A stretch of DNA of 63,618 bases, the filler included, from Platydemus manokwari (Eukaryota), in assembly GCA_037951405.1 (NCBI GenBank). It is 6 parts of 6 records of this genome, joined end to end, with 100 filler letters (N's around TTAATTAATTAA, not from the genome) between each part and the next. Parts side by side here need not be neighbours in the genome. Positions count along the whole stretch, not along the records: positions 54,625 to 63,618 come from JBBMOY011317427.1; 5 more parts are not named here. One strand, given 5' to 3'. The notes below the pieces were generated by a model. It was not told the DNA's origin and searched no databases. It saw only the letters and a list, made by a program, of their open reading frames with translations. This document shows, in pieces, positions 54,625 through 63,618 of the stretch. Made by a program: the position numbers and the translations under genes. The number at the start of each line of letters is the position of its first letter. Position 1 is the stretch's first letter.

Positions 54625-56982
54625 TTAATAAACACTCAATTGTTCTAAAAAAATTCCGGTTTTTAAGTTATAGACCCAATAATTAATCTCTGACTCCAAA
54701 ACTAGAAGGCTAAAACTTTATATCAAGTGCGTACTACTCAGTTAGGCTTAGAAAATAAATACGCTCAACATACTTTTCAAAATATAAACAAAACCTGGCT
54801 TCCAACTGGCATGTGGCCATCTTTAAATCGATTTATATATTCGAGACTTGTATGCAATTTTTTGTGTCATGTTATATCACATTTTTATTCAATCTTAAAA
54901 TTTTCCATGTTTCTATTGAGTTTTTAAGTTTTTCCATGAATAGGATTGGTCACTCTCTATCTGTGTGTTGTTGTGTGGCTATGTCCATTTTTCCAATGGT
55001 CGTTTACCATCTAACTAAACTGTGATTGGCTGGTGAATATGCCTGTATGGGTTCCAAGGTGCAAATCCGTTTTTCTTTTGCAGAATTTCATCTCACTCAA
55101 TAGAAGGTTTTCATCAGATTTTCATGTTTTTGAGGGATTCTTCATGTCTACTGAATCGTTTATTTCTTTATGCCTGTGTACATAGTTCTCGTGAAAATAA
55201 GGAGTCTATTTCAAATTTGATCGATAATATTGTTATAGTGTGAGATACGTGCGATATAATCTATATAAAATAGGATAATAAAACTTGTTAAAATTAATGA
55301 AAAATGTTAATATAGAGAACACTTAATGATAAAATGAAAATTATAAGTATAGAAAAACAATATTAACCATTAAATTATATTAATAAATGAAAAACTTCGA
55401 TCAAAATGGATACGTTTGGTAAAAAAAAACAAATAACTCACAATTTAAGAAAAAAGCTCATTATCGTACCAGCCCGAGATGAACAAAGATGAACAGACCA
55501 AAGATAGCAAAGTCGCTTAAATCATAATCGCATGAAAGCTGTGCTCAAAATTTGGACAAAAAATTTCAAATTAAATTGAAAATTTATATATTGCACATCT
55601 AATAAATCGTTTATTTTAATGCTTCATCATTATTGAAAGCTTATTCTATTTGAAGAAAAGATAGTTAGATCTTTTACAAGTATATTTCATTTTACTCTAT
55701 TATTAGATTCGTTATTCAATCGAATTGTTTATTATGTAGCAAATGAATTTAATTTTTGTAAAATCAATTTTTACCAAGGCTGTACAAACGACTTTGTGAA
55801 ATTTCTTTAAACTCTATCTTAATTAAAGCATCATCTCTACAGCTATAAAAGTTGATTTTGATCACCGTAAGTGAGTTGGCGTACAGCTATAGATAAATAA
55901 GTCTTATTTCTATTTGATTCAATAATACACGTTTATAATTTATTTGGTGCAATTTTTGGGTAAAAAGCAGTTGAATAAAGTAAGTGGAAATTATTAATTC
56001 ATAAGTAAAGCATCTTGGAATCGATATCATTTGTTGACAATAATTGTACATTGCAATTTGTACTTTAATATCCAGTGAACCTTAAACCGTAACTTCTCTT
56101 TTATAAATACTAAAAATAGTCATCATAAAGCTTTTTTTAAATTTCTTCAGTCACATTGTTTTGGAATGAATCAATTTTTATATTTTATCAATTTAATTTG
56201 AAGTTTTGCATGTTTATGACATTAACATTATTTACAATATTCTTATAAAATGGGATCTCTCTTATGGGTCGTTTACAAAATGAATAAGTAAAGATATAAA
56301 TTCAGTAAATTTTTAATTTTTTAGAAATCCTTGACATAAATATGCGCATAGATCAGTGGGTATATGCTATTTAGTAGTAAATATTTTAAAATTTAATTAA
56401 ACAGATGGTTAAGAATTATAATGAAAAATAACTACATGAATAAATATATATTAAATAACAAACTTAATATTGAAATTATTTTCGAGACAATCGAATTTTA
56501 ATAATACTACCATGCATTAATTTATTGGAACTGAAACTTTTGTTAAATAATTCGAGTTAATCTTTCTGAAAATATTGTTCAAACCACATTATCTAAATTT
56601 CAACATTTAGTATTGAAGTAAGAAATTAATAGTGCCGATGAGACCCTAAAGCAGAAAACAATGATATCATATAGTTCCCATTGGCTTCATTTTACTGGTA
56701 TTTTAATTTAAACATTAAACATTCTAAAACAAAGTTTAAATATTAAAAAAAAATATTTTGTAGTAATTTTTATTGTTTTTAATGGCAATCCAAAAGTCGA
56801 AGTCAGTATTAAATAAGCTTTAAATTTGCAAGTAGATGAATTCCAAAATTAAAAATAACATTACTTAAGAATAAAGCAAAAATAATTTAAACAAAATAAT
56901 TGAAATAACACTGCCGATACTTTTGTTTTATTATGCAAACTTTTAGTTTCAATAATAAAAGTATCAATATTTAAAACTCGAA

Positions 56983-59484
56983 ATGAATACAAATTATATT
57001 TATGTATCAAACATTCCAAGTAATTTTAAACCCGTACTCTTGCTGCATGAATTGGATAACAAATGGGCAAGAATGTTGTATTTAGAGAATACCTTCAGTG
57101 GACTACGTGATGCGTTTATTTATAATCCTACTAAAGCCTTCAATCATTTTCAAAGAGGTGTCGAAAAATTACGTGAAAAAGTCATAGATGGAATGAAACC
57201 ATTGACAGTCTTTTATGTATGGTTTCCTCCGGAAAATGTTTTTATAAGCACAATGGTAATTTATAAATTGGTTTATTTTATAGTTGTTCGAGATTGGTGA
57301 CAATTATCTATATATACATATATCGTTATTTATAACTTTTGGTAGATTCCTGAAGGTGCTTCAATGCTATCATATATTTTTGTGGAGAATTTACACAAAG
57401 ATATAATTACACCTGAAATAATATATGATTTACCTTTGCAAGCTTATGATGTTAAAGCTTGGGATATTCCAGAGAGACATGACAAGTACTGGTACAACAT
57501 ATATTTATATTATCATATTATTATTTATAAATTAAAATAAGACTTATTTGTGTGGATTTTATGCATAAAATATTTTAGATGTATGATTATCAAGTTACCA
57601 GTAACTAGTAACGATGCTTTACGAAGTTTTGTTTTGGGTACATTGCGGAGCAGAGTTATTCGTGGAGTGTTCCCAAGAGCATCGGAATTAATAATTACCG
57701 AAGATTTTGTTTTGAGCACCAATATGGTACCACGTTCAATAAAAATTAATCCAACGTAGGAATTAATAACAATTGTTTAAATCTGTTTGAATTGAAATTT
57801 ATTTTACAGTGAAGATTCTTATATGTCAAATTTCTTCTATTTACATGAAATACCTTCAAAATTAACTGTCAAAATGTTGATCGAAGTGGCGAAAACTGAA
57901 AACATTAAAGGTTGTCGGGTGTTTTTCGTTGAGACAAACAACAATATGAAATATGGATTCATGTATTTACCAAGATCATTACCTCATACAAGATTTATGG
58001 CTTTGTTTGAAAAGTTGTCTTCAATGGAATTTAAATTATCAACTGGTGAAAGTGTTCGAATTAAAATCCAAGAAACGTGGTTTAAACCACCTCTAGCTGA
58101 TCCTCCGAGTGTAAACAGAGAAGATGGTGAAATGATTTTGACAGAATATTTACATTTATCTGGAATACCTGCTAATATGCAAGCAGCACAATTATCTCTC
58201 ACTTATCCATGTCCTTTGAAACTTAGTATTTTTCCCGTTAATGAACAATCAACTCAGTAAGTTTCTTTCGTTTTTTATCATTAAATATAAGACATATTTT
58301 GATTAAATCTGTTTAATTTTAAATTGGAGTAATTTATTGATTGATTAAATATATATATATCAATTATTTAAAATTCATCAGTTTGTTTACAAATAAACAA
58401 ATATTTACATTGTTAAAATGATATGATTTTCAAATAATAACTATTATTATAATGATTTTAATATTTTAGAGTTGGATTTATAGTTGTGCGAGGACTTGTT
58501 GAACATGATGTGTCACATATGATTAATCATTTCCGAAATTTGGAATTAGGAGGAACATCAATTAGTGTTGATGAAGTTTATATTCATTGTCATGGATTAT
58601 CAGATGATATTTCTGAAAGACCTTTTCAATTGATTCCAAGACAAAGTCGAACTGTTGTTGGTAAATCTGTTGATGTTTCAAAGAAACGATTGATTCAAGA
58701 TTCAAACCATAACAACCATTCACCCATTAACATAACATTGACAGAAGTACCACCTGGTGAATATAATTTGATGAAAACGGAATTTGTTTGCATTGATAAT
58801 TTACCGAAAAATATTGCCAAGGCAGCATTGATATTTGATATCGGTCGTCCATCAGATGGATGTGTGATTATTCCACAAAGAGATTCGAGGTTGGTTTCAA
58901 TGGTTTAAACGTTTAAATTTAAACATTTGATAATAATAATAGCAAGGCATTTATATATTATCCTGACTGTGAATATGAAGAATGGAAATCAATACTTTTG
59001 AAATTTGTTCAGAAACAATTTGGGGGACGAAAAACGAATGTTTATGAAGTATATTTGCAAACTGGTGAATTGACAATCAATAATGATTGTGAAGTTTGTT
59101 TTAATAAATATGTATATAAATCAAATGAATGTTTTTATTTCAGCAGTTTGAAAATTCCAACATTATATTTGCATATAATATATCGTATGATGTGGATATT
59201 GAAGAAATCATTAATATCGATCGATCTTCAATATCATATGTAGAATTATTAGAAACAACCAATGGGAGCAAGTATGATTCATAAGATATTGATTATCGAT
59301 TATAAATAATTATTGTAGAAGTGCATTTATTGTATTCAATAATGCTCAACAGAACGAATTGGTATTATTGGAAATCATTCGTAAGACCTATGTTCGTGGT
59401 AAACCAATTTATGCTGATATTATAAAATTGGCCAACATAGGTGTAGGTTCATCCAATAAACGAAAAAGAATGTTCAATGAATAA
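56983..59484 (+). CDS. Six-degenerate-RRM protein, 633 aa; join(56983..57255,57346..57485,57579..57755,57810..58256,58470..58889,58943..59093,59144..59271,59319..59484)
   Basis: All seven introns are GT-AG and the phases join into one frame (1902 nt). Six RNP2-like strands (YIYVSNIP, YIFVENLH, FFYLHEIP, YLHLSGIP, FVCIDNLP, IIFAYNIS) pair with RNP1-like strands (RDAFIY, KCMIIK, KYGFMY, QVGFIV, SKAFIY, KSAFIV). C-terminal NKRKR. Confidence 0.8.
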
Positions 59485-59629
59485 ATGTTTAAATCTTATT
59501 TCCAATTTTTATTTACGATAAATATACTGTAGCTAAAGCACCTTTTTATTATTACATACAAATATATATCCAAATGCGGAAACAGTTGAAAGACAATTAG
59601 TGTATGGAATTGAGTTAAATCGTATTTAA

Positions 59630-62394
59630 CTATAAATTTCCATGACCATTGACTAAATTATTTTTATGAACGTAAAACTGACATTTTAGATGTACAAGGT
59701 ATTGCTGAATAAGAAGGGATATCTCTTTACGTTTAAATTGCAATGCTTGATGTAAACATCTACTAATCATTATATTTTGCAATTTATAAGGCCCTTTGAA
59801 TTTTGTTAGTAATTTGAATACCTCTTTTCCATCTGAAAATATGAAATTAAATCAGTGGTCATATTTAGATTATTAACCTATTTTAGGATGGCGTAAGATA
59901 GTGATTAATTTTTTCACTAAACTTTTATTGTGATAATAATTATCTTTATTTGAGTGAATGTCAATGCTTGGACTTTTGAGAATAGTATTGAATACCACAT
60001 CTTCCTTCAGTCCATTTTTAACTTTGATATCAGTTTCTTGACATTCTAAAACTACACGTTATCTATACAATTATATCGGATATAAATATCACCAGAAATT
60101 TCTGAAAGTGTTGGGCTGGACATGCCACTGCAAATAGAATTGGTTGGCGTTTTCCTCCAATTAAAATAAGTCACGTTCAATGGTAGTGGTCCTAAATAAA
60201 ATTATTGGTGTCGTCAACATAATTTGACAAAAACCTTTAGTTCGTCCCATTTCTGAATTGGATGGTCTTCGACTTAATTTTATACCTTCACCATTCGATA
60301 GCATATCTTCAACAAACTTTTCATCTGCTTCAAATGCATTGGATGTTGATTTCCTTCTAAATGGATTACCAAATGTTTCTTTTCTTTCTGGTGCAGGGTG
60401 TATTTCTTTCAATGGTTCTGGTAGTTTCGAATATTTATAATTGGAGTAATCACCCATTTCTGACATCGGCTGTTCATGTATTAGTTCTCTATCCATGAGT
60501 CTTGTATTATTCAATATAAAATCTTTGAAGTTTCTGATATTTTTATTCACCATTGTTCTTAAATGACACCTATTTACTTTATTTGGCAAGAAATAAGAAT
60601 TCATATCAACTCTGGCAGTTCTATTTAATACTAACTGTACACCTATATTATCACTCAAATCCCCATTCATTTGATTGAATGATCTTTTTAATAAATTTGT
60701 TCCCCTGTGTAAAGTTGCTTTAAGCTCTACGGATGGTAAAATTCTTTGATCCATTTCAAATTGCATTTTAGCTGTTTGCCGAAGCTTTTGTAAGTTACTT
60801 TTCAAATTGAAAGGCAATATTCTTTCAATTGATTCTTGTTTAATTAAATATGGCAAACCAATTCTCTCAAAAGCCCTCGATAATGGCGAAAAATAATATT
60901 TCGGAATTATTCCCAAATAATGAGCGAATTTACTTCCCCATTGGTCATTTATGCGCATTTTTAAAGTATCGTGGAGATTTGACAACAAATCAATTAGAGC
61001 TGGAAAATTGTACGAAAGAACATATAAGTGAACTGATTGAAGATCTGAGCTTGGCTTTAAATAGCCAAATGGATAGTCTTGAGCTTTACCACTTTTAGGT
61101 ACATAACAATGCCAAACAAAATTCGAATCTCTCCTTTCTAATATATATTGAGTCAATGGAGATGGTTCTAATTCATATCTGTCTAATGGAAAATGATCCA
61201 TAATTTTTGGAATATGCATTTTAGTAGTTGAAAAGCAAATTATCGGATGAGCAGATCGTGGCGGCTAGCAAAACATATAATATTAAAGTAAACCAATTTA
61301 AAATTACTAATTTATCATTTAAATGTTCATCTGGCCAGAAAGACTCTGGAATTGGCCAATGAGAATTGGCTGCACCAACACTGGATGATTTAACGTAAAT
61401 CATTTTCTTACAATTATGCCATCTTTGTGATTCGACTTTTAGATTTTCATTATCTAAAATAATAGATATTTAAATATTTGTTAGAAAATCTAAATAGTTT
61501 TTTAATTGTCATTTGACTCAAAAATTAAATTAAAAAAAATACTTTCATCTAATTTCATAAAATGAAGCACAACTCCCGGGTGACATTTTTGTGACAATGA
61601 TTCTAAACATTGATGTAACATCCGTTCATTAGTTATTTTATAAGCACGTCCTAACAAAAATTCAAAAAGGTACAATTAATAAATTTTGTACCCCCAGTCA
61701 CTTCACACATGGAACTGATGGGGCAATCTTCATCAGTAGGAATAAATTTTGGTATTTCAATTTGCTCCATGGGAAATCCCGGAAATCTTAATACAATACT
61801 ATATAGTCTATAATCCCACCTAAATGGTTCTGATGTATATTCATGTCCAGGAACACTAGGACTGAGCATTGGAAGATTCAAATCGCCATTAAGTATACCA
61901 GAATCCGACGTTAATTTACCCCCATCTGTTATACAAATAACAATTGCATGTTCAATTTGACTTGGATATCTTCCCATCCCATAATTTTCAAAACCACTAT
62001 TCATTCGCATTAAATTCAGCATATCAAAAGTTCGTCTTATTCCAACACCTAAACTTGAATATCCATTTGGTTTAATAATGTCCAAAGTTGTGCGTATAGA
62101 ATGAAGATTCTGTTTACATTCATTAGACTGAATTATTTATTATTAATGGAAATATTTAAATTGACGTACCTTTAAATTATTAGGTTCCTTATCAAGACTG
62201 AATATAAAATATCGATCAGAACGTGAAAATTTCAAACGTATCTAAATTTATAAATTAATTAACTTATTAGTTTAATTTTGTACCTTATAAATTTCTTCAA
62301 CACATCCTTTAGCTATATCTAATAATGATGTCCCCAAATAAGTACGCTGATTCATAGAAGCACTATTATCTATCAAAAACACTATTACAGTCAT
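59630..62394 (-). CDS. INTS6: Integrator complex subunit 6; 9 exons (62394-62284, 62241-62170, 62127-61692, 61650-61543, 61453-61308, 61264-60235, 60191-60093, 60045-59878, 59832-59630), 790 aa
   Basis: VWA start MTVIVFLIDNSASMNQRTYLGTSLLDIAKG. Conserved ITDGGKLT, EPFRWDYRL, CEVTGG, HWPIPESFWPD, FPLDRYELEPSPLTQYILER, PFGYLK and FGNPF. C-terminal INTS6/SAGE1-like helical domain (FKLLTKFKG...QFKRK). 2373 nt in frame. Confidence 0.96.
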
Positions 62395-63618
62395 TTTTTA
62401 CTTAATAAACTTTATAAGAAAGTAAAATTTCATATACAGCAACAAAAAATTTTTCGAAAGTAAAATTTTTAAACTGCAATTGTCTATTGAATGCAGGCTA
62501 ATATATTGCAAGTTGTAAAGCCTAAATGCGATTTGATTGGTTTGCTTTAAAATGTATGGGGCTCACTATAAAGTAAAAATTACAAACAAATTTAAACAAC
62601 GATAATAAATTTTTAATAAATTAATTTAATTTAAACTCAATACACAAATCTAGTTATATTACAATTTTAACTAACAACCATTTAATTTCATAAAATAAAT
62701 AAATATTTAAAATATTGTATATTATGAGCCTCATTTTTAAAAAGTGCCAATTGAGCTTTAAACAAACACGTGTTTTCAAACTTTATACTATTGTTCCAAA
62801 TTGTAAACGGATTTTTCTAAATTGTATTTTAAGACTGTAATATAATTTCTTACTAAATAAATATATTTTAATAAATGATTCTCGAAATCTAATTAATATA
62901 ATTTAATATAGTCACTGGAAACAGTTTATAATTTAAATTACTTTATATATTAGCTTTATTTAATAACACATTTAATAATTTCGATTTTTAAAACTCGTCT
63001 TTTACCTATTATAATGCTAAATAACCGAAACGGATATTAATTTAGATATATGAATTAATATAAAATTTATATAACAGCAATTTTATTCAAAACATAATAA
63101 TAATTAAATCTGCTTTTTGCATGTTTTCAATTCAAATAATACGTTTATAGAAAACTTATAAATCATATCACGTATTATGGTGTTAATAAAATAAGTATGA
63201 TTCTAATATTTTCCCCATTGGCATTCAAGTTGAATTTCTTTTAATTAAATGTTCTCATAGTTACTTATTTAATATATTTGAACTACCATTTATTTGCTTA
63301 TTTATTGTAAATTTGAAAATTATTTGAGGTTTCATCAAAAAATTGTCATTCGTTTTAAATGATCGTTTGTGATATTTATTTATTTAAGTAACTCTTGCAT
63401 GTATTTAATCAAAATATTTATTTTACGGTTGTGATTTAGGAATAGTAATCCTAAAAACTCATTTGTCTCAATTGTCTTACAAGAATTAATTATTAATGTT
63501 TAAATTTACTTCTGTTTACAAGACTCGATATGCCTGTTCATGTTTTAATACGTTATTTATTTAAATACATATACTGATAAACATTATATTTGAATTATAA
63601 TATTCTGAAAATGATTTA

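Follow-up and report, generated by a model that had tools for sequence, protein, structure and literature searches.

What does a spliced gene encode if no exon of it matches a Pfam model of the RNA recognition motif (RRM), and does its intron pattern record how it was assembled? This question is raised by positions 56983–59484 of a window from Platydemus manokwari (assembly GCA_037951405.1; the window is the whole stretch of 63,618 nt, filler included). An earlier note, made from the sequence alone, had read this locus as an unassigned protein of six RRMs that had been assembled by internal duplication. We analyzed the part from 54625 to 63618 and rebuilt the gene model from the DNA. We consider it probable that the locus is a gene for a 633-aa protein which consists almost wholly of six tandem, strongly diverged RRMs, arose by serial intragenic duplication and acts as a multivalent RNA-binding protein or scaffold of a ribonucleoprotein (RNP).

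Six repeats of one domain

The rebuilt gene comprises eight exons on the plus strand. Its coding sequence (CDS) of 1902 nt translates into 633 aa plus stop, and an in-frame stop sits nine codons upstream of the start ATG. All seven introns are of the GT-AG type, and each of them contains an in-frame stop if retained. In order, they measure 90, 93, 54, 213, 53, 50, and 47 nt, with the phases 0, 2, 2, 2, 2, 0, and 2.

The 633 aa comprise six units of 85–95 aa. For each unit the earlier note had named an RNP2-like strand, an RNP1-like strand and a beta4 strand, and all 18 motifs were found in the rebuilt protein. They show the canonical spacing, with 37–39 residues from RNP2-like to RNP1-like and 25–32 residues from RNP1-like to beta4 in all six units. 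Local alignment of unit pairs, compared with 200 shuffles, gave z-scores of 8.2 (units 1 and 5), 6.7 (4 and 5), 5.5 (1 and 3), and 5.3 (1 and 4). If a hidden Markov model (HMM) of five units was used to score the sixth, 0–1 out of 2000 shuffles of the respective unit scored as well, and this was found for each of the six. The six units are true repeats of one another.

The aromatic positions of the RNP motifs differ between units. In the register of the PDB profile match described below, an F occupies RNP1 position 5 of every unit except unit 2, which has I there. At RNP1 position 3, an aromatic residue (Y) is found in unit 3 only, which is consequently the only unit to keep both RNP1 aromatics. 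RNP2 position 2 reads Y, F, Y, H, C, and F from unit 1 to unit 6 and is thus aromatic in units 1, 2, 3, and 6. The predicted isoelectric point (pI) is 9.0 for unit 1 and 9.3 for unit 3, while the remaining four units range from 4.6 to 6.4.

Assignment to the RRM fold

Searches and structure predictions employed single exons or the natural proteins of relatives, and the joined protein was used for self-comparison only. A profile (A2) was built from the whole units 1, 3, and 5, the halves of units 2, 4, 5, and 6 as rows of their own, and relatives. Against PDB sequences, it matched chloroplast cS22 (E = 5.2e-7) and a second cS22 homolog, the 30S ribosomal protein 2, chloroplastic (1.4e-6), followed by nucleolin (6e-4), PABP (6e-3), and then MIP6, IST3, Nop4, and Prp24. 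Every match at E < 0.6 was an RRM protein. The RNP2, RNP1 and G-x-x-hydrophobic beta4 motifs of the units fall in register with those of cS22, nucleolin and PABP.

Structure prediction points in the same direction. AlphaFold delivered the order b-a-b-b-a-b for unit 3 (predicted local distance difference test, pLDDT, 87.4) and for unit 1, encoded by exon 1 (pLDDT 75). The top Foldseek match of unit 1 was RRM1 of TIA-1 with a template modeling (TM) score of 0.73. For unit 3, the structure matches are RRMs as well, and the top ones include the RRM-like domain of UPF3B and PID-3/TOFU-6. The language-model neighbors of exon 4 in the ESM Atlas all belong to the RRM clan (0.84–0.89), which we treat as a lead only. 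Exon 1 obtained no usable match there, and phmmer found no match for exon 4 among PDB sequences. Two sub-threshold Pfam matches, DUF7744 (E = 0.019) and LRR_11 (E = 0.11), were judged to be noise.

Because of the PDB profile match, the folds of units 1 and 3 and the mutual homology of all six units, we assign the domain to the RRM. Six units of one RRM-type domain, as proposed in the earlier note, are therefore borne out. The same is true for its view that annotation at the level of open reading frames (ORFs) would miss the gene, since neither an exon nor a relative gave a Pfam RRM match.

A shared intron site and the growth of the array

Four phase-2 introns, namely 2, 4, 5, and 7, lie three residues before RNP1 position 5 of units 2, 4, 5, and 6, respectively (K|CMI, Q|VGF, S|KAF, and K|SAF). 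This coincidence had been noted before, and in the rebuilt model it is exact. If seven introns were placed at random (2 million trials), at least three shared a common column and phase with a frequency of 1.5e-4 and at least four with 5e-7. In a MAFFT alignment, three of the four introns occupy one column, while the fourth is offset merely by the placement of a gap within the b2-b3 loop, which is variable. It coincides with the other three if the RNP1 aromatic residue is taken as the reference point. Taken together, a shared intron site inherited through internal duplication is supported.

The borders between units show a different picture. Phase-0 introns separate units 1 and 2 (intron 1) and units 5 and 6 (intron 6), as described earlier, but the phase-2 intron 3 at the border of units 2 and 3 had gone unmentioned. 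No intron is located at the 3/4 or 4/5 border. The idea of a duplicated module of two RRMs is not supported, since the mean z-score was about 2.3 for unit pairs of the same parity vs. about 3.1 for pairs of opposite parity.

How might such an array have formed? We suggest that a phase-2 intron was present where strand beta3 begins in the ancestral RRM unit, and that repeated duplication of this unit within the gene most likely produced the array, with the intron being copied along with the unit. Unequal recombination inside the pre-RNP1 introns would copy the back half of one RRM together with the front half of the following one. From each pre-RNP1 intron to its successor, the coding sequence measures 624, 420, and 279 nt, each of them whole codons, and because of this such recombination would keep the frame and reproduce the intron site. 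From units 1 and 3 the pre-RNP1 intron would have been lost later.

Relatives, designated P0001 to P0003 and P0005 to P0007 and introduced below, add to this picture. Intron 5 is missing from P0003, but the donor of intron 6 seems to be retained, which gives the contig of P0003 a genomic appearance. Intron loss within this gene family is plausible. P0006 keeps unit 3 followed by unit 4, which implies that the array predates the divergence of these relatives. As further observations, P0007 seems to run into an intron at the unit 3/4 border, where the window has none, and P0006 begins inside unit 3 with non-homologous residues and may have an intron there.

Relatives, splice junctions and selection

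A comparison on the DNA level is provided by L001, a 735-nt genomic contig of a related organism that carries P0002 (81% aa identity). L001 and exon 5 share 80% nt identity with two 3-nt indels only, while introns 4 and 5 are at 52–56%. The shift is sharp at the AG of intron 4 (from 52 to 80%) and at both the GT and the AG of intron 5. Over 137 aligned codons of exon 5, the ratio of nonsynonymous to synonymous substitutions (dN/dS) against L001 is 0.10 with a dS of about 1.1. Unit 3 is the most conserved part between relatives, and its core is nearly identical in P0001, though the proteins differ by about 20%. Judged from these comparisons, purifying selection acts on the locus, which represents an intact protein-coding gene of an animal with an AT-rich genome.

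P0001 (78% identical) is a UniParc entry, whereas P0003 (64% identical), P0005, P0006, and P0007 originate from the ENA metagenome assembly ERZ27256860 and P0002 from ERZ27257134. P0002 came from a word search, not from the large profile search described below. Within ERZ27256860 alone, relatives occur at 29–85% identity, which suggests several related species or else paralogs.

The exons correspond to the units as follows. Exon 1 (56983–57255, aa 1–91) encodes the whole of unit 1, with RNP2-like IYVSNI, RNP1-like RDAFIYN and beta4 GMKPLTV, and is backed by the rebuilt model, AlphaFold and Foldseek. Intron 1 (57256–57345, 90 nt, phase 0) marks the unit 1/2 border; its GT-AG ends and the stop encountered upon retention argue for it, while cross-species support is missing. 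Exon 2 (57346–57485, aa 92–138) holds the front half of unit 2 with RNP2-like IFVENL, as seen in the rebuilt model and the unit alignment. Intron 2 (57486–57578, 93 nt, phase 2) interrupts the codon of K138, with RNP1 position 5 of unit 2 following three residues later. Besides the model, P0005 points to this junction: it starts with non-homologous residues and then continues with CMIIKLPV... exactly from the intron 2 acceptor position. The back half of unit 2 follows in exon 3 (57579–57755, aa 139–197), which aligns to P0001 and P0005. Intron 3 (57756–57809, 54 nt, phase 2) lies at the unit 2/3 border and is consistent with both the model and P0001, which runs uninterrupted over the junction of exons 3 and 4 (KVNQT|QDAYIS).

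Exon 4 (57810–58256, aa 197–346) comprises unit 3 (57814–58095, with FYLHEI, KYGFMYL and GESVRIKI) and the front half of unit 4. Intron 4 (58257–58469, 213 nt, phase 2) falls within the codon of Q346, likewise three residues ahead of RNP1 position 5, here in unit 4. Here the model is joined by L001 for the acceptor and by P0006 for the donor, as the C-terminal end of P0006 (...STQ) equals the donor position. Exon 5 (58470–58889, aa 346–486), for which L001, dN/dS and the alignment of P0002 and P0003 speak, encodes the back half of unit 4, a 53-aa linker and the front half of unit 5. For intron 5 (58890–58942, 53 nt, phase 2), which divides the codon of S486 at the corresponding distance of three residues ahead of RNP1 position 5 in unit 5, both donor and acceptor are indicated by L001. 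P0003 reads uninterrupted over the junction of exons 5 and 6 (RESS|RAFIYYP), without an intron there.

Exon 6 (58943–59093, aa 486–536) provides the back half of unit 5 in the model and is aligned by P0003 up to ...LE. After this point P0003 shows V and then a stop, one codon past the exon end, as expected at a GT donor. Intron 6 (59094–59143, 50 nt, phase 0), which separates units 5 and 6, is thereby indicated by the model and, for its donor, indirectly by P0003. The front half of unit 6, with IFAYNI, is found in exon 7 (59144–59271, aa 537–579) according to the model, the unit alignment and the leave-one-out HMM. Intron 7 (59272–59318, 47 nt, phase 2) lies inside the codon of K579, again three residues ahead of RNP1 position 5, in unit 6; it is part of the model, without cross-species support. 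Introns 1 and 7 are placed by reading-frame logic and repeat periodicity only. Finally, exon 8 (59319–59484, aa 579–633 plus stop) encodes, in the model, the back half of unit 6 and the basic tail NKRKR (59455–59469). NKRKR corresponds to residues 625–629 and KRKR to 626–629, and the protein ends with ...SSNKRKRMFNE. The 633-aa product and its end, which resembles a nuclear localization signal (NLS), were thus reproduced from the DNA, the KRKR-type patch as a sequence pattern only. An AATAAA at 59480–59485 shares bases with the stop codon of the six-RRM gene.

Distribution and orthology

To delineate the distribution of the gene, we searched 1.84 billion representative proteins at E <= 1e-3 with a profile made from P0001 and exons 3 and 4. 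Six matches were obtained, four of which are real and all of these fragments: P0001, P0005, P0006 (40% identical) and P0007 (29%). At this threshold neither RBM19, nucleolin, PABP nor any other named RRM protein was matched among the 1.84 billion representatives. The other two matches were rejected. P0004, a diatom 'chitin synthase' (E = 1.6e-59), is a summation artifact, because its score adds up from some 50 almost identical repeats of 59 aa with −2 to 7 bits each, while P0008 has three repeats at 10–13 bits each and is a tandem-repeat artifact. Two scans of JGI metagenome contigs revealed nothing real. The first was empty, and the second delivered L002, which shares a short PPGEYNLM-type pattern only and was rejected; by our reading, this pattern sits in a carboxypeptidase-regulatory-like domain at the N-terminus of a bacterial TonB-dependent receptor. 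As far as sequence similarity can be detected, the gene is restricted to a narrow clade. With just four fragmentary relatives in 1.84 billion representatives, the protein does not qualify as a clear ortholog of RBM19 or another known gene, and on this point the reading of the earlier note stands.

Comparison with known RRM proteins

The mouse nucleolin gene is described with two exons per RRM, a layout that is classically traced to the duplication of such an exon pair (Bourbon, Lapeyre and Amalric, 1988, cited in PMC2190831; layout also in PMC2711064), and exons 5–14 of rat nucleolin are stated to encode the RNA-binding and the glycine- and arginine-rich (GAR) domains (PMC2711064). The six-RRM protein resembles nucleolin in its tandem RRM array and the two-exon RRM layout, and nucleolin is also among the profile matches (6e-4). 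However, it lacks an acidic N-terminal region, acidic runs and a GAR/RGG tail and starts directly with unit 1. Furthermore, nucleolin has four RRMs instead of six, the internal intron is found in four of the six units here, and orthology is undetectable. The parallel concerns the two-exon layout.

RBM19/Mrd1, a ribosome-biogenesis factor, likewise comprises six RRMs per polypeptide, but this count alone is not diagnostic. In contrast to RBM19, the RNP motifs of the protein described here are too diverged for the Pfam RRM models, the protein is shorter and its linkers are short, and only a few close relatives exist. PABP combines four canonical RRMs with a C-terminal MLLE domain, whereas we found six units and no extra domain; none of the exons had a Pfam RRM_1 or MLLE/PABP match. 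RRM1 of TIA-1/TIAR is the closest solved fold, yet with 11–16% identity the resemblance is one of fold only, and the TIA proteins consist of three RRMs and a prion-like domain, unlike the six-unit protein. The UPF3 RRM-like domain and the PID-3/TOFU-6 pair, which are among the top Foldseek matches of unit 3, are protein-binding RRMs with degenerate RNP motifs. However, they are single domains in other architectures, and a sequence relationship was not found.

Function and alternative explanations

Most likely, the six-RRM protein binds RNA in a multivalent manner or serves as the scaffold of an RNP. RNA binding by one or more of its units appears somewhat more probable than the opposite. The basic units 1 and 3 would be the best candidates for RNA contact, while the more degenerate acidic units may bind proteins. 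The nucleus is a candidate location, suggested by KRKR at residues 626–629 and the conserved SKKR of the linker. This 53-aa linker between units 4 and 5 (58603–58761, aa 391–443) contains the motifs ERPFQL[IV]PR and SKKR, which are kept in relatives down to 64% identity while the surrounding sequence varies. Both motifs are candidate docking or NLS motifs.

Might the protein have kept the RRM fold and yet be a pure protein-protein scaffold of pseudo-RRMs like those of UPF3 and PID-3/TOFU-6, without direct RNA binding? RNA binding by most units is indeed doubtful, because RNP1 position 3 is non-aromatic in five of the six and unit 2 lacks both RNP1 aromatics. In addition, units 4 and 5 have H and C, respectively, at RNP2 position 2, the pI of four units is neutral or acidic, the Pfam RRM HMMs remain silent, and precisely these protein-binding RRMs rank among the top Foldseek matches of unit 3. 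It is the same unit 3, however, that is aromatic at RNP2 position 2 and at RNP1 positions 3 and 5, that has a pI of 9.3 and that is the most conserved part among the relatives, while the aromatic residue at RNP1 position 5 is retained in five of the six units. We therefore regard a pure protein scaffold as unlikely and prefer an array in which RNA contact is confined to some of the units.

Two further alternatives concern origin rather than function, and we give little credence to either. A very diverged ortholog of a universal multi-RRM gene (RBM19/Mrd1 or nucleolin-like) in a fast-evolving lineage, and hence no restriction to one clade, would agree with the RRM number, which is the same as in RBM19, and with the neighboring INTS6, which is just 32–44% identical to named INTS6 proteins of other phyla. 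RBM19 has a length of about 900–1000 aa, and with 633 aa the six-RRM protein is much shorter; it also lacks acidic N-terminal stretches, a GAR/RGG tail and long inter-RRM linkers. Among 1.84 billion representatives, the profile matched neither RBM19 nor nucleolin nor another named RRM protein at E <= 1e-3, and in the structure search the RRMs of RBM19 rank no higher than dozens of unrelated RRMs. Such hidden orthology is thus very improbable. We are equally skeptical that the four coincident introns were gained independently at a favored site after unit duplication, in which case they would hold no record of the assembly. The pre-RNP1 intron site is admittedly not fixed, because units 1 and 3 as well as unit 5 of P0003 are without the intron. 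But the chance of four placements coinciding in site and phase is about 5e-7, the exon flanks of the four sites (CAA|ATG, TCA|AGT, GAG|CAA, and CAA|AAG) reveal no clear common proto-splice consensus, and L001 has intron 5 in the same place, so that loss in P0003 is the simpler account. Inheritance of the intron site through internal duplication accordingly remains our preferred explanation.

Genomic neighborhood

Convergent with the six-RRM gene, the gene of Integrator subunit 6 (INTS6) is located on the minus strand at about 59633–62394. Its VWA start lies at 62275–62394, its beta-barrel domain at 60164–61219 and its C-terminal coding end near 59633. The stretch 61654–62085 matches human INTS6 structures (4.8e-34), and the named matches that show the 32–44% identity include spider, lungfish and Macrostomum, among others. 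INTS6 marks the genome as that of an animal, but its named matches do not single out one phylum. The stop codons of both genes are only about 150 nt apart; thus the two 3' untranslated regions (UTRs) are very short or overlapping. A minus-strand AATAAA was observed at 59508–59513.

L003 is a Logan contig of a relative (GC 44%) whose INTS6 is 93% identical on the aa and 74% on the nt level. L003:1900–2185 aligns to 59454–59700 of the window across the inter-stop stretch, with long conserved blocks that may be INTS6 3' UTR elements. The final ~30 nt of the six-RRM CDS fall within this alignment as well, and their conservation may have this cause.

The GC content across 54625–63618 is 19–33%. In the roughly 2.3 kb from 54625 to 56900, upstream of the ATG, no convincing coding frame was found on either strand, and the GC content drops to 21–26%. 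Short ORFs at 54706–55240 are hydrophobic and of low complexity. Scans of 54625–63618 for Rfam families, tRNAs and tandem repeats found nothing.

Overall assessment

Several observations weigh against the interpretation of the locus as a six-RRM gene grown by serial duplication. Pfam RRM models match neither any exon nor P0001–P0003, even at E = 10, with units 2, 4, 5, and 6 scanned as halves. The predicted folds cover units 1 and 3, while units 2, 4, 5, and 6 cross exon junctions and are tied in by homology. RNP1 aromatics are absent from unit 2, and position 3 is aromatic in unit 3 only. The similarities between units show no clear order of duplication. An RNA run matching the locus was not found; the sole matching run is not recorded as RNA, and its contigs are without joints. 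Lastly, L003:2186–2816 (630 nt) contains no recognizable ortholog of exons 5–8. Beyond the conserved block, there are short collinear mixed-frame scraps, each at E > 0.09 except for the last 26 residues (E = 0.006–0.34), and the six-RRM gene seems to be missing from this syntenic place of L003, to lie elsewhere or to have degenerated.

Going one step further, one might speculate that the protein is the founding member of an undescribed, Pfam-invisible RRM subfamily in one small animal clade. Its array would stem from intron-mediated duplication and be under strong constraint, with unit 3 binding a clade-specific RNA and the degenerate units docking the proteins of a lineage-specific RNP. We offer this tentatively, as a possibility that falls somewhat short of an even chance.

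Multi-RRM arrays from internal duplication are already textbook knowledge (nucleolin, PABP), and current understanding is unchanged in this respect. What the locus demonstrates is that a conserved multi-domain gene of the RNA-binding type can escape annotation at the ORF and the Pfam level entirely, as its RRM domain becomes visible only if the repeats of the gene are combined into a profile or if a structure is predicted. In addition, the locus is a clean case of an exon structure that has kept a record of how the domains were duplicated, and close relatives point to intron loss. If this truly is a clade-restricted RNP component, it would be a candidate for lineage-specific RNA regulation.

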